Origin: Geosiphon pyriformis uo1
Taxonomy: Eukaryota; Fungi; Glomeromycota
Assembly: GCA_016748015.1 (NCBI GenBank)
Contig: JAAOMT010000586.1
Span: 248,001 to 312,000, forward strand
Direction of reading: 5' to 3'
DNA: 64,000 bases
The notes beneath the pieces are model-generated. The model had not been told where the DNA came from, searched no databases, and saw only the letters and a list, made by a program, of their open reading frames with translations. A program made the translations under genes and the position numbers. Each line of letters starts with the position of its first letter. The first letter of the stretch is position 1. Of the stretch, positions 2,832 to 60,929 are shown piece after piece.

Positions 2832-2893
2832 CTTTTGTTATATTTTTTGTTGGTATTGTTCTGGTTTTGTTATATTTTTGGGTTAAAATGTTC

Positions 2894-9200: not shown

Positions 9201-9204
9201 TATA

Positions 9205-9221: not shown

Positions 9222-9223
9222 AA

Positions 9224-13100: not shown

Positions 13101-14264
13101 TTGCAATCAGTATTGGGTCAAGCATCAGCATATTAGGAATGTTATCCATAGTAAGAATTTAAGAGTTAAATGGCACAAGATTAAGGGCCACTCTGGTATT
13201 TTAGGGAATAATTGTGCTAATAGCATTGCTAATGCTGCATCTCTTTCTGGTTGGTATCTTCTTCCTTATGTTAGTGAATATTTTTTGTTGGCAGATGGTG
13301 GTGTTGTTTTTAGTAATTCTAGGCACTTTGTTTGTGATGTTTTTCATGCTGTTTGTTGTGCACATTGGGAGGTTGGTTTTGGTTCTGGATTTCTAGATGG
13401 TGATTTGTGTTCAGATGTTAATTGGCTTTGTTCTTCCAGAGTTTGGCATCCTGATTTGTATATGGCCACTGGTTTTACCAGCAGACTGACTGCTGATACT
13501 TGAACTTACCTCATGAAGACTTTACACTGTTGGCTTCCTATGGCTGTTCGAAAGCGCATTTATGATAAATATTACCCTAGTGTTCTGTGTCTGTATTGTG
13601 GTGAGATGAAGGTGTCTAATCATGTGTTTTTTTGTGTAGTTGATGATTCAGCTTGTTATCAAGTCTTGGAATCTTGTATGTTTTCTTGGAGGGTGTTTTT
13701 TGGTCTCTCTTTTTCTTCTTTGGGTGTATTACAGCTGCTGTTAACCTGTGCTTTGGACTTTCTGGTTCCTCAACTCTTTACAAGGGTTTTGTTTTTAATG
13801 AATGGCTTCGGGAGGCTATTTCTGTCTTCCATGATCCCAAAGTTGCTGGTGTTAAAATTGCTGATTTTGTGCGATCTATTTGTCTTGCTTTTAGGAATGA
13901 CATTTGGTTGGTCTGTGCTAAGCATCATGCATTTATGAAAAAGAATGGCCTGATTCCAGTAGATGGCTTGATCTCCATCTCAGTTTCTGGTTTGGTTTTG
14001 GGTTTTCAACTGGTGTGATTAAATTGCTTGGTATTGCTAAAGCTTTTGGGATCCATTTTGGCTTTTGCAAGTCTTGTGCATTTTTTTCAGGTATTGATGA
14101 CCTGGTTTCTGTCAATATAAATGCATAGTGTTGTCCTGACTGGCTCAAATGGCTAGTCACATGTAGAAAATGCATGATTCATGTTTAGTTTAGATCATTT
14201 CCTTGATGTATAGTTCTAAGTGGTGTTTGGATCTCACTCATTAAATAAATAAATAAAATAAAAA
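10153..14264 (+). mobile_element. LINE copy 1 (3' part of ORF2: end of APE, RT, RNase H, Zn finger, 3' UTR, A-rich tail), interrupted at its 5' side by the Gypsy
   Basis: GKAAGLSGI, PIALIKT, QDMQKAYD, GEVFSPLL, AFIDNTIW, RNase H VYTNGS..ELQAI..KGHSGILGN, CLYC..HVFFC. Stop at 14126-14128. Confidence 0.93.
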
Positions 14265-17109
14265 TTTTTAAAATTAAAAAAACATATTGGTCAATTTATT
14301 TATAAAATTTTTTACTTATTAAAATATTAATTTAATTATATTTTTCTAATAATAATTATTTATAAATAAAACATAATTTATTGTTTTATTTTTTATTTTG
14401 TTTTAAGTAGTTAAATCATTTTGAATAACAAGTTTTATAATAATAATAAATATAGTTTTTGAATATATATAAACTTTTATAGATAAAAGTTTTTTGTTAC
14501 AATTTTTGTATTTAAATAAGATATAAACTGATTTTTTTGGTTTTTATTTTAAGTAAAAAACATACTAATCATTAGTTTGTTTAGTTGTTAATATTGATTT
14601 AACATAGTAATTTAATATTTTGATTAAAAAATTGTTAATTATAATTTAAAATTATTGAAAATTTGTTGTTTGGTTTTTTTAATGTAATTAGATTATAAAT
14701 TAAATATTATATAGATTATAATAATTGGTTTTTTTTTCTTTTTTTTAAATTTAATATAAATATTTTTTTAAAATATTTATTAAAAATACTATAAATAATA
14801 AGGAAAAAAAACTTTTTCTCTCTTTTGTTTCAAATTACAAAAAAAAAGTCTAAAAGTTTTTTGAAAGAAATTTTTTTTTTACAATTCAGTATGATAAATT
14901 TAAATTATTTTTGCTTAATTATGAGACCACTGTTGGTGCTAGTATTACTGTTATAAAGAAGATGATTAAAAATTCTGATTTAGCTGAAGGTTTTATGCCT
15001 GTGTTGTTAAGAAAGAAAAAGAGAGATGGTACTTTAAAAGATAATGTTAAAGCTAAAAAAATTTTTGTCAAAGTGGTTGGTAATCATTCTTGAGGTTTAG
15101 AAGCTAATAATACTACTGAGTTTAATGGTGTTCACATAAAAGAGGAGTGTCTGGTTGAGGAAATTAGTTTCAACTATAATAATAGGACTACTTTTAATGG
15201 CAAAAATACTGACCAAATGCCAAAGAGTTCATGTGTTAAGACCAAAAAAGCTCTGAAGAAGCCATTGAGTAAAATCAATTTTCTGAGTGATAGCAATGAT
15301 GATGATGTTTTATTGGATGTTCTTCTGGTTTTTTCTCCTTCTTTGAAAGTTTTGGTTGATATTCCAGTTAAAAAATTATTTACTTTAAATATTGACTTAG
15401 ATAAAGTAATTGGAAAATTTTCTTAAAAGAAGCTAGTGGCAATTAGAAAATTATTTTCAAAAATCAATGGTTTTGGAAAGGCTTTTACTCCCTCAAAATT
15501 TTTTGGGATTATTTGGACAATATTTACTTCCAAATTGAGCTTGGTACAAGCTTCTAAAATAGCAATAATAGCAAAGATCTTGGTAAACACCAATCTTAAA
15601 AAATTTTTTAGTTATTCAGATTGGACTGTGGTAGTAAAAAAAATTCCTATTAGAACATCAGCTGAGGCTGTGTGTACTGTGTTTTTTGAGTTTAGTACTA
15701 TTATGTCAATTAAAATGCAGTTGGTAGAGCTATGGCAAAAAGCTGTGGTAGAGTTTATCCAATCTGATCAGGCTGATTTGGTCATAGTTAGATGGTTCAT
15801 CTTAATCAGAAAAGATGCTGTAAGAGTGGCTAAGGCTAATTTAGACAAGAAATAGTGAAATACAAAAAATCAATATAGAGCACTGCTCTATACACTACTA
15901 ATAAGCACTAATGCTTATAACATTTGAGATTTTATTGGTTCTGTGGGTGGAAAAACATGCATTATTGATTGACATCCAATTATATATAGTGAACTTTTTC
16001 TATAGTCTCTCTGGTTATAATTACTATCTTCTTATAATCACATTTTTTTAAAAACCAAAACCATTTATATATAATATTATCTTCTTATAGTCACTTTTAC
16101 TATATATATCTTCTTATAGTCTCTATTTCCACAAATATGATAGCAGAATATAAGTAATTTCCACTCTCTATAGTCACATTATAATTATATAATATTTAAT
16201 CAAACATGTACAATCAGGGAGATTTCCCAATTTGTTAATAAAAATCATTCTTTTTATAATAGTAAAAAAAATTAGAAAAGTTTCTGAAAATGATTATAGA
16301 ACACTAAACAAAATTTTTGAAATATTACAACATTCAATTACTCTTCTTCTTTATAAGCTATCACTGCCATCAGAAGACAATGACAGAACTATTATATCTG
16401 GCTTGTTGTTTGTGAGTATTATGAGAGTTTTAATAATAGTTGACATATGGTACAGTACTGCTGCTCTTGATGCTTTGGAAACTGGTGGTGTTTCAGAGGC
16501 TAATAGTGCTTTGGAAACTGTTGCTGCAAGTATCAATGAAGTTACTCTGGATCAAACTTTGGCTAACAAGATTACTTTTTTTCCATATTGGGAGAAGAAA
16601 TTAACAGACCTACAAACAAGAATAATGGCTCAATGAGATCCTCCGAGAACAAGTTTGTTAATAGAACATTATTTGAGCAAATCAATTGGAAATGGAGTTT
16701 GAATTTACCTTTCCTTAGAAAAAGAAATGTAACTAGTAATAAAACTCAGAGCATAAAAATTCTGATATATACCCAATAAATACATTTTTACACCAATTTT
16801 GGCATTTGCGATTAAAAAAAGGCTCTATACTAGCAATAATATTCATCATTCAACCAATATTTAATATTAGTGAGCAAAAGTTTGACTAATAGTTTTAAAG
16901 ATGTATTAAAAATCAACTTTTTTGGGGCAAATAAATCCATGTTAAATGCTTTTCATAATCCAAACATAATCATGCAGAATGAAGATTTGGACCTAAATTC
17001 AACATATCATGTTTTAAAAATGCCAATTATAAATAGTAATATATTCAATCCAAGATAAACAAAACTGTACACAATACAATATATTTTTAACTTCTTGAAG
17101 AATATTTAT

Positions 17110-26059: not shown

Positions 26060-29039
26060 ATAACCAAAACAAAAAATAAAAAGACTGTAGTTAATATTTT
26101 TTCAAAGATATATAATAAAATTTTAACCAAAAAAGTTTTTTCTATTGTTAAAGCAGCTAAACAAAATGTTTTAAAAGCTTTTTTTTTAATTAATAATAAC
26201 AAAAAGCTGTTTTTAGAGATTATTGTATCATTTTTTTCTTTTTTGGCTGATTTTTTGCTGGTTAAAATTTTCTTAAAAAGATATATTTAAGTCAATTTTA
26301 GTGTTGTCTTTATTTTTTTCAAAAGCCCAAAAGTATTTAATAATAGGCCAGTCAACAAGTTGGTTTTTTTACTATAGTTTCTATATTTGGTGCTATTAAT
26401 ATTATTTTTTTAAAAAATAGTCAAAAAAACCAAAAATTCAAAAAAGTAGAAGCAGTTACTCATCTCTGCTATTATTATATTAAACTTTTTTATAATTAAA
26501 TCTCTATTATATTATCCAATTTATTATTTAAAATAGACTAAAATTAACCACTGACTGTATTGCTAAATGTAATGTTTTTTAATAAATTATTGTCAATTTT
26601 AGAAACAAAACAACAGTTTTCTGTTAAATTATCTGTTTTTAAGACTAAATTAATCAGATAAAAACTAAAACATTCTTTTTGCTGGTTTTTGGTACTGTTG
26701 TTAATAGTACTTAAGAAATTATTTCTAATTGTTAAAAGTTTTCTAAATAAGTGGCCTTTACTCTAGTGCTTAGTACTACTTTTAAAATTAAATTGGCTTA
26801 TATTAAAACTGTTTTTTAGTCTGTACATGATTTTTTAAATGTAAAATTAGTATTAAAAAACAATATAAAGCTTTTTTATATAAAATTTGCTTCTTAAAAG
26901 TTTTTGAAAACTGTATTTTTGATTGAATTTACAAGTTTTATTTACTTGGCTATTTTTAAAATTGCCAAATCTTTAGTAGTTTTTAAATTTGGTTTTTTTT
27001 TGCTGCTGTTGCTGTATAATATGTCTTTAGATATGTCTGCTGTTAATATTAAGACAGTACTTAGTGTTTTTAATAAATTTGTTTGTATTATATTAGAGTT
27101 TGCTGGTGTTTAATAATACATAATTGTATATTTTAAGAAATTAGATGCTGCTGTGTTTGTTCTTAATTATTGGTTTGTTTTTGTGAATAAAAATAGTGAT
27201 AAAATTTTTTTTTGGTAAATTAAAATAAGTCTATTTTATTTAGAAACAGATTTAAAACCAAGTTAATCAACTTTTTTTTTAGCTATACTGTTTTTAAAAT
27301 TAGCAATATAATTTCTTGAGTTAGTAATTAGTCTTGTTTTATTTCTCATTTATTTAAATCTGATTATTGTTTTCAGTTTATGTTGGTTACATTTGGTTCT
27401 CAAATAGACTTGAATACTATAGTAGTTAAAACTAATATACTAAGAAAGTATTATATTTGATAGAAAACTTCTAATTATTAATATTGTTTTAAATATTAAG
27501 AAATAGACAATTTAATTGTAAATTGTAAGATTCTTTCATCTTTTTCTTTCAAAATTTTCAAGATATTTGTATTTTGTTTTATATATGTTAAGTTTTATGT
27601 TAAAGTTTTTGTTCTTGTGAATATTCTTAAATTTTTTTTCTTAATAGCTTTTATTTTTCTCTCTATAATATTATTTATATAAAAAAATACCAAAAAAAAT
27701 TAAAAAAACAGATTACAAAATAGATTAATAAGAAAATAGTACTCAATAAGTAAACACATTTTCAAATATAAGCACATTTTTAGAAAATAGTGTAAAAAAA
27801 GAGTAAAAATAGATAAAATCTTATATAACATAAATTATGTATATATAACAAAAATATTAGAAGCCAAAAAAACAGAACAGTAGCTAAAGATAAGTAATTA
27901 TTCAATATTTTTTCTTTTAAAAGATAGTTTTCTATAACTTAAAGTAAAATCATACTTATATCAATAAAAATATCCATTACTATCCAATTTATATTGTTAT
28001 TGTTTGATTAAGAAATATTAATTATTTTTATACTATTAACAATTTATGTTAATAAAATTCAATATTTAACTATATTAGACCAATAGTTTTTGATTATAAC
28101 TATTAACAAAATACTAATTTTTTATTTATTTTTTTATTTTTTTATTTTATTTTTGAATAATTAACATTAAGAATAATCTGGTAAAAGACTCATAAAACAA
28201 GGATAAAAAACTTAAAAATAGCTTATTAGAAGAGCATAACTGTTAACATAAACTGGTTATCATGCTAAAAAAAAATTTATGGAAAAAAACATCAATTAAA
28301 TCTCTATCTATTATACAAAAAACTCAACCAAAACCTTTAAAAATTACTATTATTAATAGTTATTAAGTACCAAGTTATAAGTTTATTATTTTTTTTAACA
28401 TTCCAAATAATTATTTGTAACAATAATTATTAATAATTTTCTGGTTTTTTTTTAGTTGGCTTTTTTAAAGTTTTAATTTGACCAAATTAATCATTTTGGT
28501 TGGATCTATTGCTGAACTTGTTAGTTTTTTAATAAATATGTTTAAAGAATTTATTAAAAATAATTTTATTTTAAGCAGTGTCTTTAATTTTAAAGTTAAT
28601 AAGCTTATAATGTATTTAAATGCTTTTAATAAGATTGTTAATAAGTTAAAAAGAAAAATAGTATTATTAAAAAAAATATTGCATAAATAATGTTAACATA
28701 TCTGGTGGTTTTATGGGTTAAGTTGTTGTTAATAATAAAACATTTTCTAATTTAATATTATTTTGGATTTATAAATTTGTTGAAATTAAAACTAATCTCT
28801 TAAAAACAGTTGAATAATTGGTTGGATTGGTTTTTTGTAGTATTATTTTGTTTAAAATAATTCAAAAAATGTTTTTTAAATAATTTTTTTTATTATATTA
28901 GCATAGTATAGTTTGAATTAGTTTGAATAGTTAGTTATATATAAAAAGTACATAAATTATATTTAGTACTGAGATATTTAATTTGTTTTTAACTTTTAGA
29001 TAATGATTAAGTTATATTTATTAAACAATTAAAAAAAAA
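26060..29039 (+). mobile_element. ORF1-only non-autonomous retroelement with the LINE 3' tail, extremely decayed
   Basis: Decayed ORF1-like frame with RRM-like segments and a knuckle remnant (CFKY*EIDNLIVNC, ~27484-27530). It ends at gcatag (~28906), followed directly by a gap-free homolog of the LINE 3' UTR and an A tail. No ORF2 sequence is recognisable. Confidence 0.75.
27669..28422 (+). repeat. Ghost solo LTR related to the Gypsy LTR, inserted in the ORF1-only element
   Basis: tctattatacaaaaaactcaa and taccaagttataagtttattatt...tgtaaca match the reverse complement of 9224-9360. TATTAT...GTAACA ends with ATAA on both flanks. Confidence 0.75.
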
Positions 29040-29388
29040 TTTATTATTTAAAATTAATTAAATTGATTCTTTTTTAATTTTTGTTTTAGTATATATAATT
29101 GTAATTGTTTTTTATTTAAAAATATTTATATTATTAAATAAAAAAAATGAGTTATTTGCTTTAAATTTAAATAAAAAAATATTTAAAAAATTAATATTTT
29201 TGGCTATTTTAACTAATAAAATAATAGTATTATTAAAAAAATTTTGTTGTTATATTGTAGTTTTATTTTTAAAAGTGCAGTTTAATAAAAATTTTGGTTT
29301 TTAAACATTATTAAATAATTAAATTAAATATAAAAATGTTTTAGTTGCTGTTAATTATTATTTTAAAAAATCAATTAACTATTAAAAC

Positions 29389-29505
29389 TTTTTTTTTTAA
29401 ATTTATTTACGAATATGGCCCAACCATTATCTAGCATATAAAAACATAACAAAAAAATCTTACTAAATATGGCTTATATACTTGCTATATGTAATCAGCT
29501 ACTTA
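29389..29505 (-). mobile_element. 5'-truncated LINE-family 3' tail
   Basis: The reverse complement (aagtagctgattacatatagcaagtatataagccatatttagt...A-tail) aligns to the LINE 3' UTR. Confidence 0.65.
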
Positions 29506-30989
29506 GTTAAAATTATTTTAATTATTAATTGTTTAAAAACAATTTAGTAATATTATCAAAGATTTTTTTTTTTAATATTATTACAGTTAAAAACCATAGT
29601 TTTTATTAATTATTATATGTATTAATTATTGATATTATATAGTTAGCCACTCTATTTTTAGAAAATAATCAATAATTTAATTATTAATTTGATTAATAAT
29701 TTAATTATTAACTTGATTATCAACTACTTTAAATAACTCTATAAGTAATATATTTTTTAGCTTTAAAAAAACATGTTCTAATATATAAAACATATATAAA
29801 TCAAAATAATAAAAATTATTTTTAAAATATCTTATTTTTTTTTAATTTGCTTATTTTTTTCCCAAAATTTTTTCAAGTATCTAAACATTTTTGTGATAAA
29901 AAATTACTTGTTAATATTTATTTATAATTGTTAATTTTAAAGATTATTGAATAAATATTTATTAAAAAAATAATTAATACTTAATATTAAATTTTAAAAG
30001 TGCCAATATAAAACATAAAATTATATTAATATATTATTTTTTGTTGACAATATAAACTATTTTTTTATCTTCAAATTTCTTTGTTACTTTTTGGAAAAAA
30101 TAGCAAATAAAATATTTATAAAACTAATCTTATATATTGAATTTATACCAATTTAATTTGCTTTTTAAAGTTGAATTCTTTTTTGATTATTTTTATTACT
30201 ATATAATTTTGTTTTATTTTATTATCTGTTAACTTGTTATTTTAATCTGTAATAATATTATTAATACTATTTGCTATTAATTTTATTGTTAATAAAAGTT
30301 AATAAATTTTTAATAAACTAATTTACATAATAAACATAAATTTAGAAATCTAATAACAATCTTAAAACAAATTTAATATAATGCTTTTATAGTTTTAACT
30401 TAAAAAATTTTTGTTTTTGTATTTTTTATTAATTTTAATTTTAAAAATACTCTTATTAAACAAAAATTAAGTTATTAATTAACATAGATAATATTTATTA
30501 TCAATTAATATATAATATTAATTTTAATTTATTACATATTATTTAATCAAATTATTAAAATATTAATATTTAATTAATAATTTAATTTGTAAAATACATA
30601 AATATAATTAAATATAATATTTAAATTATATAATATTTAAAAATTTGCCAAAATATTTAACAGTTTATCAAAATATTTAATGTTTAATAAAATAATTTAT
30701 AGTTCACTAAAATATATATTTAATTTGTAAAAATATTAATAAAAAAATTAATTAAAAATTAAAGTAATATTGTAATAAAATATATAAAAACAGAGCTTTT
30801 TTTTTGAAAAAATATATTAATTTATTAAGTTCTTAATTAATTAATTAACTATTATAAATTAATAAAATAAAAACCTATTTTAAAAACTTAATTTTTTTTA
30901 TAATTATAAATCTTAATTAATATTTTAAAATTAATTAATTATTAATTTTAATAACAGTTTTAATTAATTTTAAACTTAAACAAAAAAAC

Positions 30990-30991
<2 letters not shown>

Positions 30992-31020
<29 letters not shown>
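30992..31020. repeat. (TA)n microsatellite
   Basis: Direct read, about 14 units. Confidence 0.9.
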
Positions 31021-31024
<4 letters not shown>

Positions 31025-32765
31025 TCTTATTATTAAATAGCTTATAATCAAAATATTTTATAAAAAAATTGATTTTTATAGCAAAATAGCTATATATTAT
31101 TAAAAAATTTACAATTAAAAATTTTTGTAAAACAATTAATTTTTACTGTAAAATATTTACATAAAATAATTGGCATAAAATTGGCTATTTTTATTATAAA
31201 TCTAATAATATATATGGTTCAAAATATAAAAAATATTTTAAAAATAAATTAACTTATTAAAAATTTAATAATTTTTTTAATAATAAAATTAATAACAATT
31301 TAATATTATTAATATTAAAAAAAAATAACTAAAATTTTTAATAATACTATTATAAAAACTGTTTATTTTGTTTTTTTAAAACACCAATTTTTTAAAAAAT
31401 ACCAAATTTATCTTAAATTACCAATAAAAAAATAAAAAATATTAAACAGTAATTAAATTACAGTTTTTATATAATTTAATCCGATTTTTTAAAAAATACC
31501 AAACATTATAAAAAGAATTATTTACTTAAAAATTTTTAAAATTAATAATATTAAAAAATGTAATAATATTAAAATTATTTCAATATTTATGACTTTAACA
31601 ATAATTAAAATTGTTTTAAAATTGTATTTAATATGAAAAACATTTTACAACATTATTTTTAGTTATTTTGATTATTAATAATTTTTTTTGTTTTAAATAT
31701 AAAAATAATATATGTAAAATCAATTATATTTAAATAAAAATATATTATATTTTAACAAAAAAAATATTTTCAATTGGTTTTTAAAATAAAAATTTGAATA
31801 TTTATTTATATATTTATTATTATTATTATTTATAATTATGTATTGTTTATCATATTCAAAAGATATAATAATTATAATTTATTTTCTGTAAGTTTTTTAT
31901 TAAAAATAAATAAATATTTATTTATTTTTTGAATTTAAGTTGAAATCTTTATTTAAAAAATCAAAATGAATAAATTATCTAATAACGAATCAATAAAAAA
32001 AGTAAAAACAAAAACAAAGATTATGTTTTAAATTAAAATATGTTTAATTAATAATTTACTTTATTAAATACATTCTTAATATTTTGTTTTTTATTAATAA
32101 AGTTAATAAAGTTAATAAACTTGATAATTAACTAATATTGTGTTTTTAACTAAAATTTATGCAAAAAAAGTATTAATTTGTAAAGTAAATAAAATTAAAA
32201 AAAAACATGATATTTCCAACATAATTAAACAAATTTGTAAAATTAATCAGAAAAAAGATAATTAGTAAAAAACAGTGTTTTTAATTTCTAAAATCAAAAA
32301 AAACCAAATTTAACACTAAAAAATAAATATTTGTTTCATGATAATAATATAGAAATACTAGATACAAATTTAATTTGTTCTATTATGATTTTGTAAAATT
32401 TGCACAACAATGAAAAATCTTTGTCGATAATATAAAAAACAAAATTATCGTTCAGCTTCTTTTTCTATAATAAAGAGATTTTTTTGCTTGGAATTTCAAT
32501 TTGGGCAAAAAGACATAATTTCCCCTTTGATAGAGAATATGTTTTATTGATTCGCTTGAACACATTAATTTTGTCCATTCAATATTTGTTGGGACTTCAA
32601 AGCTATATTCAATGAATTAGCGAATCTTTGATTCTAAGCTTGTATGAAAATGGGTCAAGAATATAGTTAATATTTAATAACATATGATTCGATGTTCTAT
32701 CTATGTCACTTTTTGAGATTGTGTTAAAAAGATAGCATAATAGGATTAGGTTGTTCAATACAACA

Positions 32766-40263: not shown

Positions 40264-43200
40264 TACTATTTTTTTTTTTATTAAATTTAACAAGTAAAGT
40301 TCAAATGCCATCTAGTGCAATACATCAAACTAAGTGATCTAAACTAGCTGCAAATTATGTACTTTCTACACATGACCAGCCACTTGGACTGATCAGAGCA
40401 ATACTACAAATCTATTTGAACAGAAATCATACTATCTACACCAGAAAAAAAACAGCAATGTTTACAAAAACCAAAGCAGACACCAAGTGCCTCAGCAATC
40501 CCAAACAACCTAATTACTCCAGCTGAAAACATACATGACAAACCATAAGTCACAGAATACACAGAACCATCAAGTGGAATCAAACTGTTCTTTTCCATTA
40601 AAGCTTTATATTTAGCCTTAACCAACCAAATATCTATGTGGTAGGCAGCACCCAATTCCCAAACAAAATCAACAATAAATTTTCTCACAGTCTTGGCATC
40701 ATCCAGAATAGACATTGCTTCCTGAACCCAATCTTAAACAAAAAGCCTTTGCTCACAGTAGTATACAATACATTATCAGACACACACAAAGAAAGCACCT
40801 GCAAGATGCGAGATAAAGGTGAATTCAAACCAGACACACAATACCATTTGGCCAGATAAGACATAAGAATGTTTTTATGGGCATCAAAGTCAAATGTACA
40901 AACAAAAAAGTGATCAGAACTTTTCACTTCATCACAGTGTAGACACAAAACACTCAGATAAGTCTTATTATACAAATGCTTTCACACAGCAACTGGTAGA
41001 TAGTGGTAAAGAGCTTTCAAAAAATAAGAGCACAAACTAGCTGTAGACTTATTGATAAAGCCGGCCACCATATGGGAATCAGAGTGCCACACCAAAGCAG
41101 TATGAGACCAATCCACATCACCAAGTAAACTGTTATTAATAACATCAAAATCAAGACCAACCTTCCAATAAACACAATTAACAAACCTAAAAATCTCACA
41201 AACAAAATGATGAATATTTCCAAACACTGCCATCCCACCAGCCTTGACAAACCTCTCCTTAACCAACACAGAAAGTGCCAGATCAGAACTCACAGCCAGA
41301 TTGGCTAACTTATTAGCACATTCATTACTTATAACACCTGAATGCCCTTTAATCTTGCATCAAAAAACATCAAGCCACTTTCCTTTAATTATATTAACAA
41401 TGCCACACCACTCTATCCAGCAGCAGTTGTAAAAGTCCAGAGACACCAGAGCAGATTCAGCCACACATGCATCCAGGGCAGTCTGACTGTCTAAATAAAC
41501 CACTACTGAACTGTCAGAAGGAACACACTCCAAAGCCAAAGCAATTGCCTGCAATTCCACCATAGTCGAAGACATTATTCCACTAATTCTAGTACCAATA
41601 CCCAAATTCAGATCAGAGAAGTAAGCAGCAGCACCACACTTTATCTTACATAAACCCAAATTCTTCAATAATCCATTCATGTAAACACTAATAACCTCCA
41701 TATTAGCAGAATAAAGACATTGATCCAATTTGGAGACCTCACCTGAGCTGTAAACATCCAGAGCCTGCAAACCTGCATTGTACAAGTCATCAGATGGAAA
41801 AAAATGCTCCAAAAAGCCACAAACCAGAGTGAACCAACAAGGGACCAGGTCTTTTGGATCAAGTTTCTTCCAACATCAAAAGCTTTTCTAATCAAAAACC
41901 AACTCTTTTTTAGTGTACAACTGCTCAGCAAAGACAACCCCAGATCTTTTAAGAGAGGAAAAAACATTATAGAACAAAAAAGTTCTTAGGACTGTAGACA
42001 TTAGTGTCTCACCAGAAAAGCAGAACACAGTAACAGAGAGATTGCCAAAAGACATATCATAGTCCAAAAAATCCTAACAACACCTACCAAAAAATTATTA
42101 ACTGGACTGACATGTAACTTAACTGGATGACATAGAGGGTGAATAGGTGACCAACCCAGAACTTGAAGATCCAAAGATCTATGATTAAATAAATGACTAA
42201 GAACACCACCAGCATTTAAAAAACACAGCACAGAAGCCATCTTGTATTCAGTCTGCAACTGTTCAAAAAATTTCAAGCCATACAAAGATGGATGATGAAA
42301 AGCCTTATTAGGAAAGTCTTTTGGAAGTCCAGACTTAAGCTTTAAGCCCCTTCTAATCAACATATCCCACTTCATATACACACTCCTAAAAACAAAACTG
42401 AATTGAGTCCTATAACTGACAATGGGTTGCAATACAGCTGACACTAGATAAAAAACTGCTTGTCCAAAATAGCCTTTTTTAGAACCAGATTGACAAAAAA
42501 CCTGATGTCTGCATGTGCTTTAGCCAAACTGGGTTTGGACAAATTCTCGGATAACAAATAAATGCCAAGGTACTAATGAGACTTCTTTTTGTAAGTGACT
42601 GAAATCAGCAGACCACTAATTAATAATGATGCATTACCAATCCTCTGATTAATAGGAATGGTCACAGTTTTCTCATTATTGATTGAAATGTCATTTATCA
42701 TGAAGAATTCACTTGCTATGTCCAAAATATACTAAATGATGGCCTAACTGCTACCCACCCAAATAATGTCATCAACAAATGCACCAGCCACCAGAAACAA
42801 AGTTAAACTGTTTTGGTTTTCTACTCTACCTGTTTTAGTAACAAATTTAGTATCAATTCAGTATTCACACAAACTCTCTTGCCTCTTGACCTTACACAAA
42901 AGAGGATCATAAAAGATTCTCCACAGCAAAGGAGAAAAAATTTCATCCTAGTCAAAACTATCATGTATCCAGTACTCATTAGTCAGACTGAAATCAGTCA
43001 TAATACAATTAATGTGATCATTGTGAATAGAACCAAAAAATCTAATAAAACACTCACATATTTTAATTTGAACCAAACTATTATATAAGTGATGCCAACT
43101 CACAGAATCATAGGCTTTACACATATTCTGCAACACAAGCCAAAGTTCACAATCCTTCTCTAAAGTATCTTCAACAACTGAGCCAATGACAAAAATAGGA

Positions 43201-46200
43201 GACTGAGTAGTAATGCCCTTAAGCACAAAAAAATTGTTCTTACAAAGAACATTGAATAGACAGTACACTGATGAAATATCAGAGAGCAACTTAGAAAGAA
43301 TCTTATGAACAGTCTTAATTAATGCAATCAGCCTAGTATTTATTAAAACACCCTTCCACTCATAGGGCTTAGAAATCATTAACACCCAAGCTTTTTTCCA
43401 ACAATAGGAAACTGACTTATGCACAAAACAAATGTTCAAAAGATCCAGAAGCAAGCTTAATACAGATTCATCACAATGTTTCTAAAGTTTATTTGAAATA
43501 TCAGACAAGCCAGCAGCTTTACCATCTGGTAAATCCTTAACCATACGCATCAAGTCATCCAAACTGATAGCATCCATTACATTAGAAAAAGCATCATTAT
43601 CGACATAATTCAATGACAGGTATTAACACTGTCACAAATTGGGAACATTCTTCAACATGGCCTTCTTTCTTGTCTAGCCTTCTATTATACCATCCACCTT
43701 ACTCTTGACTTCCACTGAATTCAAAATCAAAATGCCATCAGAAACCAAATAATCCAACACCACTTTGCAGAATGAACATTCCAAAACATTATGAATTGTG
43801 TGGTCTTTGTTTACCACAAAATCCTCCATTCTTTTTTTGATAGCTGATTTAATGCCTGACTCTTTAGTTCACAATGACTTGGCAAACTTAAAGGCACAAT
43901 AAGATCTTCTCATACCATAGAGAGCAAAACAGACACAATCCAACCTTACACCAAAGCACACAAGATCCCATACAACTAAAGCTTTGTTATTATCCAGAGA
44001 AATCCAGTGTTTTAAAAGAGATACAAATTGGCCAAAGTTTACCTTGCAAGAAGTCTTGACAATTCTTGAAACCAAAATTTCCAGATTATGCAACTTGGAA
44101 AACTCCTTGGTAAACATCCTATTATAACCCTTAAACCATTTTTTTTTGAAAACATCATTAGCTGAAAAAATCATTACTTTGCAAACAATGTCCCACATAG
44201 CATCCAGATTAGAGAATCTTTTGGCCAACCTAAAATTGTCTAAAAACATGACAGTATTGGCTGCAGTAGCATCCTTAAATTCACACTATTTCACTTCATC
44301 CACATTTTTGACATCATATTTCTAACAATTTTTATTTGTCTGTTTGCATAGTAAACTTAACTGAATATCAAACAAACCACCTAAACTCATGGAAGTGAAA
44401 ACTGCTTTGTGATCAGTATCAAAATAGTCTTCAACACTGGCCACACTACCATTTATTATAGCACTGCCCAAACTTGAAAAAACGAAAATATAATTGAGAG
44501 CTTTAGCAACACCACAAAAATTGGTCCATGTAGGCACCTTAGCAAACAAATTTCCTCCTAAAGAATCAACTAAACCTAAATCAAAGCATTTCCTAAAACT
44601 TGCATACTTCCAGGCACTGTCTTTATTGAAATCATCACTCAAAATTACAAAGGAGGATTCATTTACAGCTTTTGCAATTAGAGAGTTGATATCTTTAATT
44701 TGAGAGAACCAAACACCAGATAATGCACCAGCATAAAGTCCCAAAATTAAAACAGAAAGCTTATTTTTAAAAAGCAACCTGACAGAGAGGAGACATCCTG
44801 CCAATTCAGAAACTTTGCACACATGCCTTGCCAAAAAATTGTTCATAACAATAGCAACCCCAATACTCATGTAACCAGAATCCATATCAGACATAAATAC
44901 CTGAACACCATTGAATTTGTTGACAATTCATGGCCAAATCTTGCTCTTAAGTTTTGTCTTCATGAAAATTGAAACCAGATTGTCCATATCTTTGTGCCAT
45001 CAAATAACATCAGCCTGTTTGGCTGGGTTATTCAAGCCCCTAATATTGCATGTGGCTATTTTTCAGACAAGATTGGTTATTAAAAAGAAGAAAAAAGAAT
45101 GCCAGAGCCCAAACTTGCATTCTCCATCTTGGCTAAAAGACCCATCACTATTCTAGAAAGATTTTTCAAAGTCTCTTCCATCTTTGACATAACTGAAAGA
45201 TCAAAAACCACCACTCCCACAATAGTCTTACCACTAGTGGCCACACTCAAACTTTCACTTATTACTATATTCACCCCTTGATTCTGAGATAAAAGGGTCA
45301 CCAACAGCTAACATCCAGAGCTAAGCTGGAAAACTGTTGGCCTGGGTGTGTCCAATCTCTTAGCCAGCTTGTCAACACACTCTGCAAGGCTGGTAAGACT
45401 GCACTCAAGAGTGACAAACCTATCATTTAATTCCAAAAACACTAATGGAGTAGGCTTTTCCTCTAAAGAGGAGTTAGCATCTAACAAACCATTTAGAATG
45501 GAGAGAGAGGAGAATAAAGACCCACCAACAATCTTGGCCCATGAAACACCATCAAAGAAGACAGGACAAGCAACTGGTGCCGAACATTTGACATAAATAG
45601 CTGCCAGTTGGCTTTTATCTGCATCTGAAAGAAAATGACATGGCAGACTGCCAGAAGAAAATTTCCTATCAGAAACACAGCTTAGAGAGGTATGACCCAA
45701 CTTTCTATACTTTGCATACACTGCAGACCCAAGACAAAACCAATGGAAATGGGCACTTTTCAACACTGGTGTTGTTCTCATGATGGCATCCAGTAAATTG
45801 GCTGACTCAAAACAAATAATGGCACATCTAACCTGGACATATATAACAGGATGACAATTGATAACACATGTTTTTTCACCCACAGAACCAATAAAATCCC
45901 AGATGTCATGAGCAGTTGTTCCTATTGGCAGAGTATAGAGCAACACTCTATAGTAATCCCTCACATTTCACAATTTCTTGTCTTGATCAGTCCTGACTAC
46001 ACACACAGCATTCTTTTTAATCAGGATAGACCAACAAACTGTGACTAAACCAGTCTGTTTACTCTTACCAAATTTGACTATAGCTTTCTGCCACAAACCC
46101 ACCAACTGCATTTTGATTGACACCACTTTACCAAATTCAGATAATGTGCATACACAGCCTCTGTTGATGTTCCAACTGAAATTTTCTTCAATACCACAGC

Positions 46201-47013
46201 CCGATCTGAATGTTCAGATAATTTTTTGAGATCGGCATTTACCAATATCTTCGCCTCTTTAGCTTTTTTAGAAGTCTGTGCCAAACTCAATTTGGAAGTG
46301 AATATTGCTCTGATAATCCCAGCAAATTTTGAGGGAGTAAAGGTCTCCCCAAAACCATTAATTTTTGAAAATAACTTTCTGACCACCATAAGCTTCTCTT
46401 GAGCAGATTTTCTAACAACATTGTTCAAACTGATATCCAGAGTGAAAAATTTTCTAATAGAAACATCGACTAAGTTCTTTAAAGGAAGAGGGAAAACCAC
46501 AGGTCTGTCTAAGAGAATGTTGTCACCACTATTGTCCAAGAAGTCAATTTTCCCCAGTGGTTTACCCAGTGCTCTTTTGGTTTGAACTTTTGAACTCTTA
46601 GGAATTCATTCCAAGTCTCTACCAGCGATAATGCTACCTTCCTCATAATCAAAGCTGGTCTTCTCAACCAGAAATTTTTCTTCCATGTCCACACTATCTG
46701 ACTCAGTAGTATTTCCTGTCTCAAAATCTCAGAAACAATTATCTGATGCCTTAACAGCAGTGAATTTCCTATTACCAACATTATCTTCCAAAGCATTACC
46801 TCTCCTCTTCTTTCTAGACTCAGTAGACTTGATACCAATATTAAAACCAGGCTCCATAACAGACTTGTTCAGAATGACAATACTAGGACCAACAGTGGCC
46901 TTGTAATCAAGCAAAAACAGTTTGGAATTATTGTGCTGAATGATAAAAAACTTTTTTCAAAAAATTTTTTTTTCTTTTTTGGAAATTTTTGGAATGAATG
47001 AGAGAAAAAAGAC
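40264..47013 (-). mobile_element. LINE copy 4, full length
   Basis: ORF1 ~46914-45080; ORF2 ~45080-40404 (KIATCNIRG APE start, AFVDDIIW, RNase H, CLHC..HFFVC). Poly-T at 40269-40279. Flanking direct repeat TTAATACTATTT(ATTATTAA). Confidence 0.94.
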
Positions 47014-47038
47014 TTAATACTATTTATTATTAAAGTTC

Positions 47039-47070
<32 letters not shown>

Positions 47071-48564
47071 GCATATATACTTTTTTTATTAGTAATATTA
47101 ATAATATATACACTTATTATCAAATTAAAAAAATTTATTAACAAAAAAATAATGCTTAAGTTTGATTTAATAATATAAAAAAAACCATAATTATCAATAA
47201 TTAGAATAATATAAAAGTTTTACAAATAATTTCATACTTTTTATAAAACATAACAAATTTATTATATCAAAGTTTTATTATAAAACTTAATATATTTAAT
47301 ATCTTTAAAATAATGTTCTTATAATATTTTAATAATTATAATAGTATTATTTAATTACAAAACCATTTTAATATAATTAAACAGAAAAATAGTAAAGTAA
47401 TTACTATTTATTTAAAATATTTTTATTATTATTTGTGTTAAATTTAAGTAATTAATGCTAATTATTACACTATTTTTTAAATTTTAAATCAATTTATTAA
47501 AAGATTATATAATAGTATTTTTTTAAAAATCTGTTTATTATGTTTAAATAATTTTTAAACAATTATTATATTAACCAAAAATTTTGAATTAACTAAATTA
47601 AAAACCAATTATATTCAAATTATTAATTTAATAATAAATAGATTATTTAAATTAAATACTAAATTAAAACAGTTTAATAATATTATTAACTAAAAATTAG
47701 AAAAATACTTAGCTAATAATTAGATTATATATTAACTTTTATCATATTACAAACAATTAAAGTTACAATTATTTTTAAAATCAGTTATAATTATTATTAT
47801 TAATTAAGTAATAAATTAATAATATTAAAAGTAACTTGTTATTATTATTTAATTTTATAATAAAAAAAAACCAAAAAAAAATCATAAATAAATATCTCTA
47901 TATATATTTTGCTTAACCAAAAAAATTTAATTCTTAGTATATATTAATATATTTCAAGAAATTTATAATATTAATCTTTAAAATTTATTTGTATTAACTA
48001 TAAAAAAAATTTTTATTTATAAAAACATATTATAATAACAATAAAAATATTAAATTACTACTAAAATTTATTGTTTGATTATGCATTTTAAAATAATTTG
48101 GCTGTTCAAAAATAAGTAAGACAATAAATTATATTTGTTTGTAAAAAAACATTATTAAACAAAAAAATATAAAATAATATTTTTAATAGAAAAAAATATG
48201 TAATAAATTATGTTAGTACATAATTTTTATTAATAATTAAGTTTATAAAAAAATACTAATTACTATTGTTTATAATTATATACTTTTTTATTTAAAAAGT
48301 TATTTACATAAAAAAATAAAATTTGGTAAATAATTATTATTATTAAATAAAACAATATTATATTAAAACAAATTTATACAATAAAAAACATATTTTAAAA
48401 TAATTTTAAATTAAATTTATATTTACTCTATTAAATAATTTAATAAAATTTAATAAATATTACTAATTATTAACACCAATAAAAAAACAAAAACAATTAT
48501 TAACTATTTTAAATACTTAACTTTATAATTATTATCTTATTTTATATTTAAATATTATATATAA

Positions 48565-51500
48565 AAATTTTTTCTTTTTGTTGATTCTCCAATCACGATG
48601 AGAGCAAAAAAATATTTTCTTGAAGCCATAGCTTTTCTTTTCTCCTTTCTCTTTGTTCTTATCAGTTATTTCTTTAAACATATCTATATTTATTACAATA
48701 AAGCCAGCAAGTATATTTGTTAGTAAGTCTGATATTGGTTCGACTGGTTTGGGGACTTGTTTGAATACAAAAAAAAACCATATAGATAGTGTTTACTCCT
48801 GTGGTGCATCTTATAAGAAGCCGAAAAAGCCTGTTGCTAGTGATACTGTTGACTTGTCTGCTGGCCCTCTGAGCATAGAAGACTTTGTTAGTGCTAGTGT
48901 CAAGCCTGTGGTGTCTTGAAGTAGTAAGGTTGACAGTGTTGTGAGTAGTGCTAGTGGTTTTTCCAACATTAAAAACATGAAAAACATAGTTGTAAAAAAA
49001 TGAGCTATGCAGACTCAGACATTTTATTTGAGTATAAGAGTATGGATAACACTACTTCTAGGAAAACTCAAACCCATACTTACATGTTGGGACATCTGTC
49101 AAAACAGTCTTCATTTAATGATATGAATGACAATGATAGTATTCTAGAGTTTCCTCCATACATGAAAGCTGGATTCAATTAGATACTACTGTTCGAGTCA
49201 TGTGCTCCAAATACACACAGTTTTAATTCAACCAAATTTTTTGCACTTGATATTGAGCTTTCTGTGGTGTCTAGTAAGTCTATTGGTGACAAGTTGATTT
49301 TAATAAAAAAAATCTTTTATAGAATAGATGTTTTGGGGGGGGTGTCAACTCCTTCAAAATTTTCAGGGATTATTAAAGCTTTATTTATTTCTGAATCTAG
49401 TATAAATAAGACAAAGAAATTGGCAATCTGTAAAAAAATTACTGTTAATGATAATCTAAGAAAAGTAAACAGCCAATCAAATCAGAAAGTGATTGTCAAG
49501 AAGATTCCAGTTGATATTTTCAAATTAGCTATAGAGTCTGTTTTTTCTAAGTTTGGTAAGGTTGTATTAATCAAGATGTAGTTGATTGGTCTGTGGCAAA
49601 AAGCTTTGGTAGAGTTTGAATTATCTGAAATAGCTAGTTTAGTTGCTTCCAAATGGTTTGTTCTTATGAAAAAAAATTCTGTGCATGTGGCTTTGGCTAT
49701 TAATGATAAGCAATCATGGACTTTAAGGAACCAATATTGAGCATTGTTATATACATTACCAGTTGGAACTACTGCTCATGATTTTTTTGATTTGTTAAAT
49801 TCTTATGGTAGAAAAACATGCTTCATTGGTCACAATCTGAGTTCATATGTCTATAACAAATGTGTAGTGGTTTGTTTTGAGAATGAGGCATCCAAATTGG
49901 CTGTTATTGATTCTATTTCAGTTTTCAAGGATGTGAATTTGCATTGGGCCAGTCTATCTTTGGCTTGTTGTGCTTAATGCAAACAATTTAGTCATGTTTT
50001 TATTAATTGTGCTGTGGATGAGAATCATGGTAGTCGCAGTAAGTGGGTGGTTAATTCTCAGAACTGGGTTCACTTGGTCAACATTTATAAGAAAAAACAG
50101 ACACCCATCACTTGTCTGGTTTCTTTTAGTGGCAAAACTTGGGCCCAAGTTGCTGATGGTTCTTCTTTGCTGGTGGTTCTTCTTTGCTGGTGGTTTTTTC
50201 AGTTCTTTCTGGCACTAGTTTTTTTTTTGGTGCTAAGTCTTCTCCTAGTTCTATGTTTTTCTTATACATCTCTGCACCTCTTGGTGTCTTTGGTTTGTAT
50301 GATTGTTTGGCATCTTTAGAATGCTCTTTGGTACTTTTAGTCAATCAAGTTTCCAGTGTTATGAAAAATTAAATCTTGTAGAACTGGTGCCTTTGCCATC
50401 TGTCTCTCAAGTGCTTCTTTTAGCTGTTCCTATACCTTTGGTTTTGTGTTTGACCTTAGATATAGTCTTGGATAATGTGTTAGTGTCTTCTGTTTTTTTT
50501 TTCTCTACTGTTAAAAATAATGTTTCTGGTTTTAGTTTTAGTAGCTTCAAGATTCTAACCACTAAAGTGGGTGGCTTAGAGTTAAAGATGGTGTCTTTAG
50601 AAGCCTTAATAAGTTCAGTACTAATTAGGTTGGATCATTTGTGCTCTAATTTGAGTGTTTTATTACTGCTTTCATCTTAATGAATAGTATGGTGTAGAAA
50701 ATTGCTATGTGTAATGTTAAAAAAATGAACAATCCTGCTAAACAGGATAATATTATTTATTAACACAGAGACAAGGACAATTTAGTTTCTATTTTTACAA
50801 AATCAAAGTTAAAAGAGAAGGTTTGCTTCTGGATTGTCAACAAATTTGGTAATGTGTGAGTGTTTACCTCTGGTTTAGAATCTGGCTATCTAGGTGTTAA
50901 TGTTGTGGTTGTCATAAACTTTTCTTTGGCAAAACATGTGTGCAAGGTTTCAGAGGTGCTTGGTTAGCTTTTGTTTATCAAGTTGCTTTTCAAGAATAAA
51001 CTTTCTGTATCAATTTTAGGGCTTTATGTTGGCACATCTTTGGCAGTTTGGTTTTCTCAGGCTGGTAAAATCAACTCTCTTATTGCAAAGGCTGTCAATA
51101 AATCTTCTTTTGTCATTTTTAGTGGTGATTTTAATAAAAATAATTCTCACAAGTGTGCAAGTTTCAAAAAGTGTCTTGATCTGGGGCTAATTAATTCCTT
51201 GGTTGACAGCCCAGCTGTGAAAAAGTCTACTTGGGCAAATTCTAGAGGTGTTATAAAAATGATTGATTATGTGTTTGTTTCCTCCAATCTGATTAATGCA
51301 ATAGTGTATCATGATGTTTTGGAAGTCAGTGAGTATTTTGACATGGATCATCTTTTCATTTCTGTGTCTATGGGTTTGGGTGAACTCTTGGATACATGGT
51401 TGAACTCTCTTCACAAACAAGTGAATAGAAATTGATGGAAGTTTGATTTCAAAGATGCTGATAAGGCTAAATAGAATGATTTTAAAGATGCCATATTGGC

Positions 51501-60852: not shown

Positions 60853-60855
<3 letters not shown>

Positions 60856-60927
<72 letters not shown>
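60856..60927. repeat. (TAA)n microsatellite, ~24 units
   Basis: Direct read. Confidence 0.95.

Positions 60928-60929
<2 letters not shown>

Follow-up and report, generated by a model that had tools for sequence, protein, structure and literature searches.

The AT deserts of Geosiphon pyriformis are integrated transposon copies that have been stripped of most of their cytosines, and they record a transposon-restricted C-to-T process in a fungal group for which none has been reported. Transposon DNA is hit by this process and genes are spared; the two strands are affected alike, and conversion is even along each copy. The excess of the pentamer ACCAA/TTGGT among the residual G+C is real yet secondary, being the footprint of a mild context bias and not of a protected motif. 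The window analysed here is a stretch of 64,000 nt (contig JAAOMT010000586.1, positions 248,001 to 312,000). All mutation spectra come from this window, 200 kb of sampled DNA and 10 gene loci; the analysis covered 264 kb of a 128-Mb genome.

Extent and residual cytosines of the AT deserts

With 28-29% GC, the genome as a whole is AT-rich. Deserts were defined in the 64-kb window by a 200-nt GC content below 0.16, which delimited seven of them with a total length of 11.8 kb and a GC content of 9-15%. They are listed below, unstranded, together with one local motif cluster.

14264..14842, AT desert, GC 10.7%, four ACCAA, all on the minus strand
27545..28142, AT desert, GC 15.4%
28475..32302, AT desert with the initially noted region inside, GC 11.4% (29040-32400, 10.7%)
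31383..31502, plus strand, local cluster of four ACCAA
38223..40271, AT desert, GC 8.9%, ten ACCAA (nine on the plus strand)
47009..48542, AT desert, GC 9.8%, six ACCAA
55493..57852, AT desert, GC 10.9%, thirteen ACCAA (twelve on the plus strand)
60741..61563, AT desert, GC 9.0%

Two of these deserts share a related segment (38900-39917 and 55757-56749, 69% identity). The counts given in an earlier sequence-only reading of this DNA were all correct when repeated: three G+C in 30541-30600, 8 of the 15 C of 31381-31510 within the four clustered ACCAA, five ACCAA in 38381-38720 and four in 56500-56645. Runs tests on the order of G and C within the deserts indicated little clustering into strand patches (z -1.8 to 0.4).

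The deserts contain 49 ACCAA/TTGGT, where 5.9 are expected from base composition, 13.8 from dinucleotides, 38 from an order-2 and 49 from an order-3 model. The pentamer is the most over-represented desert 5-mer under the order-0 and order-1 models, and 3- and 4-mer frequencies fully account for its excess, the core of which is a count of 94 CCA versus 2 CCT. No desert lacks ACCAA, the density of which ranges from 2.9 to 6.9 per kb among them, and the whole window holds 316 ACCAA/TTGGT versus 181 +/- 12 in dinucleotide-preserving shuffles. The enrichment thus persists after control for composition, and it was found again in an independent sample of 30.8 kb of low-GC DNA (20 stretches from six other contigs, taken at positions that were fixed and arbitrary), in which CCAAA and ACCAA were again the top two 5-mers (ACCAA, 97 versus 18.9 and 28.9 expected). 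Enrichment of ACAG/CTGT was weaker, with 35 versus 13.3 and 16.6 expected in the window deserts and 80 versus 42.9 in the independent sample. The sequence-only reading had gone further and held that C and G are kept mainly in these two motifs, which overstates their share: ACCAA and ACAG account for 98 + 70 of the 1255 desert C+G (13.4%), and 29040-32400 has eight ACCAA/TTGGT and 13 ACAG/CTGT among 358 C+G. Most surviving desert cytosines are isolated, in ACA, ACT, TCT and TCA. The desert ACCAA sites showed neither conserved flanks nor a spacing pattern; the possibility that they are copies of one repeat was rejected, their flanks being alike only in A-richness. ACCAA density is similar in GC-normal transposons and in deserts (5.1 versus 4.2 per kb).

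Deserts are decayed copies of dispersed transposons

The proposal that the deserts are decayed transposon copies was borne out by alignment to GC-normal copies of the same elements. The segments and elements compared are as follows.

1..767, minus strand, LTR of the Gypsy-type element of the window (partner LTR 9386-10152)
254..5929, minus strand, Gypsy-type internal region, used as the reference on which 19 copy fragments (GC 0.20-0.39) were piled
9386..10152, minus strand, second LTR of the Gypsy-type element, pairing with 1..767
10165..14325, plus strand, LINE-type copy, GC 0.36, 72.5% identical to 51392-55565
28729..29038, unstranded, desert edge with a 30% GC homologue (70.5% identity to L016 7351-7668)
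29508..30168, unstranded, repeated desert segment, 75% identical to L016 6423-7062, which is likewise AT-rich
30488..31347, unstranded, desert segment of 7% GC, a decayed member of a dispersed transposon family that also has copies in L019, L015, L028, L022 and L011
41000..46800, minus strand, GC-normal LINE-type copy between two deserts, with relatives at 10165-14325 and 50726-55565
51392..55565, plus strand, LINE-type copy, GC 0.34, pairing with 10165..14325

In the segment 30488..31347, 176 sites were ancestrally C or G according to the other copies; 34 of them were kept, 124 had undergone C>T or G>A and 18 transversions, while 442 of the 484 ancestral A/T sites were unchanged. The LINE family that is GC-normal at 41000..46800 has a desert-grade copy elsewhere (L019 8274-9969, GC 0.14), and a genome search with one LINE segment returned at least 41 matches among 3481 candidates. 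In the Gypsy-type copy of the window (254..5929), 185 of the 793 ancestral cytosines had become T and six had changed otherwise. Across the polarised piles, 16-66% of the ancestral C were converted per copy, with other changes at 1-4% in most copies; together with the roughly 70% conversion of the noted desert, these values substantiate the graded decay series of transposon copies proposed earlier.

The change is one-way, almost confined to transitions and equal on both strands

Polarisation was performed column by column between copies, on the assumption that columns mixed for C and T had changed from C to T; the GC-poor versus GC-rich asymmetry holds without it. When the copy in L011 (GC 0.11-0.13) was compared to that in L018 (GC 0.36-0.38), at 71-72% identity, one example segment displayed 173 C>T or G>A changes, 4 reverse transitions and 24 transversions. 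Between desert and GC-normal copies, GC>AT transitions exceed AT>GC transitions about 70-fold per site. Young pairs, with transversions under 1.2%, carried 427 C/T mismatches in 4370 nt, of which 93% were non-CpG, at a transition/transversion ratio of about 21, and young copies generally showed about 21-28 transitions per transversion. The decay is therefore almost purely C>T and occurs in all contexts, and the earlier argument that CpG deamination alone would be insufficient stands: 93-95% of the C/T mismatches lie outside CpG, and CpG makes up only 5-7% of them even though 66-90% of CpG were converted.

The same data bear on whether the deserts could be untargeted, that is, very old neutral DNA at the equilibrium of an AT-biased mutation process. 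We consider this extremely unlikely. The low GC content of the genome as a whole, a single marginal UDG-superfamily match and the age of some deserts (transversions 7-10%) would fit such an equilibrium; copies with 0-0.4% transversions nevertheless already hold 6-11% transitions, transversions in one desert-grade copy amount to only 1.5-3%, and neither the 70-fold asymmetry nor the undecayed interior and sharp boundaries of the sampled gene loci are expected from it.

Both strands of the retroelements were converted to a similar extent (C>T 0.368 versus G>A 0.338), and conversion was even along each copy in 500-nt bins. Between the two LTRs of the window element (1..767 and 9386..10152) there are 67 transitions, which fall into the four strand/copy classes as 16, 12, 15 and 24, and 3 transversions. 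Strand-coordinated runs along the alignments were not found in ten pairs (adjacent-same-class z -0.3 to 2.6), although superimposed rounds could blur such tracts. These observations argue against editing of transposon DNA by an AID/APOBEC-like single-strand deaminase, acting on cDNA during reverse transcription or on exposed strands, since the strands are equal, both LTRs of one integrated element are affected and clustered same-strand runs are absent. We regard such an enzyme as very unlikely: the T or C preferred before the target cytosine does recall APOBEC3, with a preference of merely 1.5-2-fold, and the genome gave no match to APOBEC_N, NAD1 or OTT_1508 (PF08210, PF18778, PF14441) in an exon-by-exon search, a weak negative as the control genomes, too, all lacked a signal for two of the three profiles. 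The Geosiphon process and APOBEC3 editing of retroelements thus have in common the 5' T/C preference and the restriction to C>T; the former differs in being strand-symmetric, post-integration, unclustered and weakly context-dependent, with no family member detected.

Copies that are of similar age by transversions differed fourfold or more in conversion, as exemplified by the copy in L011 (66% converted at 1.5-3% transversions) and the Gypsy copies (about 22% at 3.5%). These rate differences follow the locus and not the family.

Genes are spared

Gene sparing was assessed at about 10 loci and on one gene duplicate. Within the gene loci all but one 100-nt bin had 21% GC or more, and GC fell to 5-15% in the first 100 nt or so beyond the gene. 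The two copies of a methyltransferase gene duplicated over 1.1 kb, 32 kb apart and 90% identical, had accumulated 50 transitions and 22 transversions and were thus not hypermutated. Short tandem units near L009 had a transition/transversion ratio below 1.

Context preference and the origin of the ACCAA residue

Logistic and hazard fits showed that every context mutates, in the order of speed CpG, Y-C-H-Y, R-C-A-R. The CpG rate is roughly 4-10 times the typical non-CpG rate, and R-C-A-R lies about 2.5-fold below Y-C-H-Y, the difference being visible in early-stage data (15.7% versus 35.1% converted, p=3e-14) as well as in late-stage data (45.9% versus 80.0%, p=8e-24). Conversion is influenced by the 5' base, with a 1.5-2-fold preference for T or C, and by the +2 base; the 3' base is of little effect apart from G (A 0.62, T 0.62, C 0.70, G 0.78). 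TCG is among the fastest targets. The pyrimidine flanks suggested UV-type dipyrimidine damage as the main cause, which was rejected as R-C-A-R is still 16-46% converted and genes are spared.

ACCAA cytosines were converted in 21.5% of cases versus 28.4% in other non-CpG contexts (p=0.009), about 25% less, and the first C of CCT was converted more often than that of CCA (34% versus 21%, p=3e-4). In the same aligned columns, GC-normal copies had 43 ACCAA and desert copies 37; 11 of these 37 were retained and 13 had been created by G>A in the flank. The 11 ACCAA that stayed intact represent 26% of the original 43, where an additive context model predicts about 8. The refractory motifs postulated by the sequence-only reading were accordingly not recovered, given a cytosine rate only about 25% slower and the survival of a quarter of the sites. 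Decay of CpG (CCG>CCA) was rejected as the origin of CCA, because only 2 of 85 desert-copy CCA correspond to CCG in the richer copy.

The fitted process was then simulated on sequence with GC>=0.30 down to 10% GC. The simulation reproduced the observed list of top 5-mers, with a 2.7-4.3-fold ACCAA excess and a CCA/CCT ratio of 3.4-5.3, as compared to 5.1-fold and 6.5 in the independent sample and 8.3-fold and 47 in the window, so that the window ACCAA excess is about twofold above simulation. The additive context model yields the right ranking of survivors and about half of the window ACCAA excess, and a 64-context table performs somewhat better. We attribute the prominence of ACCAA/TTGGT, CCAAA and AACAG in the residue to cytosines in slow contexts, CCA-rich source elements and flank G>A combined: GCCAA, ACCAG and the like give rise to new ACCAA by flank G>A, and ACCAA density therefore barely falls while C+G drops about threefold.

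The rank of ACCAA as top desert 5-mer and its twofold excess over simulation are what would be expected if ACCAA/TTGGT were a functional or protected element, held by a protein-binding shield or by selection. This is hardly credible in view of the small gap in conversion, an intact fraction close to the additive prediction, the unconserved flanks and irregular spacing, the sufficiency of 3- and 4-mer frequencies and the equal abundance of the motif in GC-normal transposons.

Methyltransferases, deaminases and the likely mechanism

Three C5-methyltransferase loci were identified in the genome: one with RFD, two BAH and methyltransferase domains (C371:420027-423692), one with BAH (44.7 bits) and a methyltransferase match that contains stops and may not be intact (C702:1326152-1327926), and a compact one devoid of RFD or BAH (C657:788k). 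At the first two loci the methyltransferase is accompanied by chromatin-reader domains, as expected for all-context, DIM-2-like methylation. The compact enzyme could not be assigned to RID: in a sequence comparison against solved structures it was about equally similar to bacterial Dcm-like, plant CMT-type and DNMT1 chains (E 5e-16 to 1e-14). The five dCMP/cytidine-deaminase-fold matches in the genome are all ordinary, and the UDG superfamily is represented by the one marginal match mentioned above.

The deserts and the ACCAA footprint as a whole are best explained by a one-way, transposon-restricted C>T process, probably a methylation-linked deamination. Methylation-linked deamination of silenced transposons is the most likely mechanism: silenced transposons would be densely cytosine-methylated, fully at CpG and partially elsewhere if non-CpG methylation is assumed, by the DNMT1 of the genome plus the BAH-methyltransferase and/or the compact methyltransferase; 5mC would then turn into T by spontaneous or methyltransferase-assisted deamination, which would be poorly repaired and build up until hardly any cytosines are left. 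The rate spread of fourfold or more between copies is not what a simple clock would give and counts against this explanation, as does the roughly twofold surplus of the window values over the simulation.

Comparison with known systems

RIP, as known from Neurospora crassa and other ascomycetes, prefers CpA, needs a RID/Masc1-type C5-methyltransferase, is premeiotic and is triggered by duplication, gene duplicates being affected too. The Geosiphon process resembles it in the near-exclusive C>T/G>A change in repeats, the AT-rich transposon relics, the sparing of genes and the bimodal GC landscape. It differs by the lack of CpA preference, in favour of the order CpG, Y-C-H-Y, R-C-A-R, by the lack of strand-coordinated tracts, by the sparing of a linked gene duplicate and by decay down to 7-10% GC.

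Could the process nonetheless be a true RIP-type defence, with homology recognition at a sexual or parasexual stage and RID/Masc1-like deamination of a context preference other than that of Neurospora? We think this unlikely. Directional, transition-only C>T hypermutation of repeats with genes spared would be expected of it, the compact methyltransferase at C657 could be its enzyme, TCG as a fast target parallels the RIP-like pattern of Pucciniomycotina (PMC3318451), and the classical RIP indices of the deserts shift in the RIP direction (TpA/ApT from 0.76 to 1.06, substrate index from 1.42 to 0.91). Copies might in principle also stay recognisable by homology throughout decay: parallel C>T makes copies converge on T, with a C>T-only identity floor of about 82%, and we therefore dropped the argument that decay to exhaustion excludes homology dependence. 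However, CpA is not preferred and a 3' base other than G has little influence, no strand-coordinated tracts were found in the ten pairs, the linked 1.1-kb gene duplicate is older than the LTR pair by the transversion clock and still not hypermutated, rates vary with locus rather than family, and the compact methyltransferase is no closer to one of its three reference types than to the others.

The view that RIP is not established in Glomeromycotina agrees with the accessible literature, which reports no RIP-like signature there: according to PMC8647823, citing Venice 2020, RIP signatures were not detected in arbuscular mycorrhizal fungi, and recent kingdom-wide screens concluded that RIP-like repeat mutagenesis occurs only in ascomycetes (PMC12543289). 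In Pucciniomycotina, transposons undergo RIP-like TpCpG hypermutation (Horns et al. 2012, PMC3318451); T-C-G is likewise among the fastest targets in Geosiphon and transposon-like repeats are hit in both, whereas 93-95% of the Geosiphon mismatches lie outside CpG and in all contexts. In the related fungus Rhizophagus irregularis transposons are CpG-methylated (PMC8647823). Decay of methylated CpG is matched in Geosiphon by CpG being the most mutable context and essentially gone from deserts and by silenced transposons being the targets; in contrast to such decay, the non-CpG loss needs substantial non-CpG methylation or active deamination.

It is conceivable, if somewhat short of probable, that Geosiphon and perhaps other early-branching Glomeromycotina possess a dedicated, enzyme-driven and transposon-restricted C>T defence, an analogue of RIP outside Dikarya with a signature of its own, acting on both strands of integrated DNA and targeted through chromatin or methylation instead of CpA. 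In a glomeromycete, C>T conversion in every context but restricted to transposons would amount to a third layer of genome defence beside RNAi and methylation. It would account for the AT deserts, extreme as they are, and for how a genome made up of 64% repeats can hold together. The failure of CpA-based RIP indices to pick up such a process would likewise become understandable, the desert substrate index of 0.91 barely passing the classical cut-off. The substrate cut-off of RIPper is stricter, at 0.75, and the deserts would fail it. The k-mer residue (ACCAA, CCAAA and AACAG, with TpC/ApC falling from about 1.2 to 0.5) would offer a simple screen for other early-diverging fungi, and transposon ages derived from Kimura distances would be badly inflated in such genomes.

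Hypermutation of dispersed repeats

The assembly comprises 128.3 Mb in 792 contigs, of which one reaches 2.716 Mb or more; for Geosiphon pyriformis, the published figures are 129 Mb in 795 scaffolds (the largest 2734 kb), 29.25% GC and 64% repeats (PMC9453076 Table 1). Along the window (G000:C659:248001-312000), blocks of 28-41% GC alternate with seven deserts of 9-15% GC that sum to 11.8 kb. All-against-all comparison of 264 kb, the window together with stretches from other contigs, identified the deserts as dispersed repeats, and several desert-grade copies could be aligned to counterparts from the same element with normal GC. Thus L011 (GC 0.11-0.13) and L018 (GC 0.36-0.38), two such stretches, share 71-72% identity, and one aligned segment displays 173 C>T/G>A changes, 4 reverse transitions and 24 transversions, two further segments being alike. 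Per site, GC>AT transitions were about 70 times as frequent as AT>GC transitions when desert and GC-normal copies were aligned. Within the desert at 28475-32302, the segment 30488-31347, at 7% GC, is one member of a family whose other copies have 13-27% GC; of the 176 C/G sites that these other copies indicate as ancestral, 34 are kept, 124 carry a transition and 18 a transversion, while 91% of ancestral A/T sites are unchanged. This desert also contains, at 30990-31020, a (TA)n microsatellite some 30 nt long.

The process that forms deserts is hypermutation rather than old age. Copy pairs nearly devoid of transversions already show transitions at 6-11% of sites: window positions 15984-18146 differ from the stretch L013 by 0.3% transversions and 10.9% transitions, and between the paired LTRs of the window's Gypsy-type element (1-767 and 9386-10152) there are 67 transitions and 3 transversions. 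In young pairs, 93% of C/T mismatches are non-CpG, and copies of similar transversion age have rates at least 4-fold apart; plain neutral decay is unlikely to have produced this picture. The decay series of transposons proposed in the sequence-only reading is real, since copies of one family grade in cytosine conversion and GC: in the Gypsy-type family 16-56% of ancestral cytosines are converted as GC goes from 0.39 down to 0.20, and in LINE copies up to 63-66%. L011 (G000:C657:100001-110000) has 13.9% GC over its entire 10 kb and is composed of several hypermutated transposon fragments; that one desert-grade fragment and its partner, a 37% GC copy, differ by only 1.5-3% in transversions suggests that mutation rate is controlled at the level of domains and not by age only.

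Two side cases were noted. A direct repeat in L027 (3159-3765 and 4945-5543, 1.8 kb apart) is a second clean transition-only case, with 37 transitions and 0 transversions in 599 nt. Two 203-nt stretches of L018 (4915-5117 and 7047-7249, 2.1 kb apart, 38% GC) show zero differences; they may have been duplicated very recently or be LTR ends still untouched by the process.

The genes sampled are spared. All 100-nt bins but one of the sampled gene loci have at least 21% GC, and GC falls to 5-15% within about 100 nt past gene ends. A methyltransferase gene on contig C657 has a duplicate 32 kb away, 90% identical over 1.1 kb of alignment; the two differ by 50 transitions and 22 transversions (2% transversion divergence), a pattern unlike that of transposon pairs. 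Tandem units upstream of a DNMT2-type locus (L009 70-851), of which the window contains one copy (62473-62674), are about 20-25% diverged, with a transition/transversion ratio below 1 and 35-37% GC, and are repeated DNA without hypermutation.

Sequence context and anatomy of the C>T process

All contexts proved mutable, conversion between GC-normal and desert copies ranging from 46% (ACA) to 90% (CCG). In a logit regression against A at the same position, conversion was raised by 5' T (+0.94), 5' C (+0.66), 3' G (+0.93) and a pyrimidine at +2 (+0.67), every context term bringing a large gain in fit. The same picture emerged from polarised piles, in which the ancestral state was assigned by column-by-column comparison of copies: CpG was 66-88% converted and non-CpG 15-35%, the slowest contexts being GCAG, GCCA, ACAA, CCAG and CCAA and the fastest GCCT, ACTC, ACCC, TCTT and ACTT. 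Purine-C-A-purine was converted less than pyrimidine-C-H-pyrimidine in both early-stage (15.7% versus 35.1%, p=3e-14) and late-stage data (45.9% versus 80.0%, p=8e-24).

Conversion is strand-symmetric in every copy (0.368 for C>T and 0.338 for G>A, as read on the reference strand). It is also even along each 5-kb copy, varying from 0.2 to 0.6 between copies, and the mutation classes are thoroughly intermixed along the alignments. Together these features argue against editing of minus-strand cDNA and favour a process that works on duplex DNA after integration, over whole copies or domains. The data show a C>T process that is transposon-restricted, duplex-level, strand-symmetric, copy-wide and one-way, peaks at CpG and is mildly selective for flanking bases.

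Candidate mechanisms

Neither the alignments nor the polarised piles revealed any CpA preference in per-context conversion, so the canonical RIP context does not apply. In deserts the classical indices move from 0.76 to 1.06 (TpA/ApT) and from 1.42 to 0.91 (substrate index); the informative ratio is TpC/ApC, which drops from 1.17-1.37 to 0.52-0.57. The main rival explanation is homology-triggered RIP with a novel context, the closest published one being the TpCpG pattern of Pucciniomycotina (PMC3318451). A 2025 screen across the fungal kingdom reported RIP-like signatures in ascomycetes only (PMC12543289), and a 2025 transposon survey of these fungi, Geosiphon included, leaves RIP unmentioned (PMC11952901). 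Dallaire et al. (PMC8647823) describe CpG-methylated transposons in Rhizophagus and note that no RIP signatures had been detected in Gigaspora margarita.

Profile searches of the contigs, run exon by exon, located matches to the C5-methyltransferase domain at seven places in the genome.

Methyltransferase and glycosylase matches
C371: RFD, two BAH and methyltransferase domains (DNMT1 architecture)
C702: methyltransferase match with stops; about 1 kb upstream of it, a BAH domain (44.7 bits)
C657: compact methyltransferase and nearby duplicate
C666: methyltransferase match, broken-looking
G000:C646:684535-685894 (L007) and G000:C692:422414-422635 (L009): two separate DNMT2-type loci (tRNA C38 methyltransferase), best solved-structure matches DNMT2 (E 4e-20 and 4e-16)
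G000:C621:250264-250581: UDG superfamily (UNG/TDG/SMUG, PF03167), sole match genome-wide, marginal (E 9e-4, 25 bits, one internal TGA)

We infer that silenced transposons would be densely methylated and their 5-methylcytosines then lost as T. Such a model fits the CpG maximum, strand symmetry, whole-copy evenness and locus-to-locus rate differences; it also agrees with the abrupt change in GC at gene ends, with the gene duplicate having been spared and with the methyltransferases available in the genome. An APOBEC-like enzyme is unlikely: the genome yielded five deaminase matches, of the ordinary dCMP/cytidine-deaminase fold, and none to APOBEC_N, NAD1 or OTT_1508, albeit a weak negative because the search proceeded exon by exon. 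Exon splitting may likewise conceal further UDG-superfamily genes; if uracil/thymine glycosylases were truly missing, this would matter for how deaminated cytosines go unrepaired.

Origin of the ACCAA residue

The counts of the sequence-only reading were all correct on recount. The deserts contain 49 ACCAA/TTGGT, where base composition predicts 5.9 and a dinucleotide model 13.8; the word is the top 5-mer by both, which bears out its enrichment beyond composition; tri- and tetranucleotide frequencies account for this excess in full, its core being CCA (94, versus 2 CCT) and ACC (67, versus 15 TCC). The sites occur in all deserts with no common flanking sequence, which rules out copies of a single repeat. 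Over the whole window, ACCAA/TTGGT numbers 316 versus 181 +/- 12 in dinucleotide-preserving shuffles. In a wider 200-kb sample (arbitrary fixed positions on six other contigs) all GC classes show a 2.3-fold excess, which climbs to 3.7-fold at 12-20% GC and 7-fold below 12% GC, and CCAAA and ACCAA take the first two places among 5-mers of independent low-GC DNA (30.8 kb). In the deserts and this low-GC sample, ACAG/CTGT is enriched about 2-fold and AACAG 3-4-fold. The idea that C and G are retained mainly in these motifs does not hold, as one or other covers just 13.4% of desert C+G; surviving cytosines are mostly isolated, in ACA, ACT, TCT and TCA, with ApC:TpC about 2:1 and CpG nearly gone.

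What is new here is an explanation of this k-mer residue. ACCAA had been taken for a refractory motif; per-context rates do place both its cytosines in slow contexts (ACCA 0.21-0.24, CCAA 0.17-0.19), but the gap is modest, 21.5% being converted versus 28.4% of other non-CpG cytosines (p=0.009). The first C is mutated in 34% of CCT versus 21% of CCA (p=3e-4), and desert copies keep 50/312 CCA but 1/129 CCT. Even in GC-normal transposon and gene sequence, ACCAA exceeds expectation 2.4-fold, and CCA:CCT there is 2.1:1. The density of the motif is nearly maintained (4.2 sites per kb inside the window's deserts versus 5.1 elsewhere, with C+G about 3-fold lower) because some sites survive and flanking G>A changes create others: 11 of 43 ACCAA of GC-normal copies persist in the desert copy, and 13 of the 37 ACCAA in the same columns of desert copies arose from GCCAA, ACCAG, GCCAG or GCCGA.

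When the fitted context-dependent C>T process was run on sequence of GC>=0.30 until 10% GC, the top survivors matched the observed list (CAAAA, AACAA, CCAAA, GCCAA, ACCAA, ATTGG). ACCAA, CCA/CCT and ApC/TpC reached 2.7-4.3-fold, 3.4-5.3 and 1.2-1.8 in simulation, 5.1-fold, 6.5 and 1.75 in the independent low-GC sample, and 8.3-fold, 47 and 1.93 in the window's deserts. Since simulated values fall below those of the window, context-biased C>T explains the footprint largely, but not wholly, leaving a residual of about 2-fold in these very decayed deserts.

Within transposons ACCAA shows a strong strand bias (window 1-14000 versus 40300-47000). The Gypsy-type element carries nearly all of its sites on the minus strand, whereas the LINE at 40-47 kb has them on plus, although the ORFs of both elements are on minus. 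A bias of this kind persists in deserts (in 55493-57852, for example, 12/13 are plus) and may be a trace of how the erased element was oriented.
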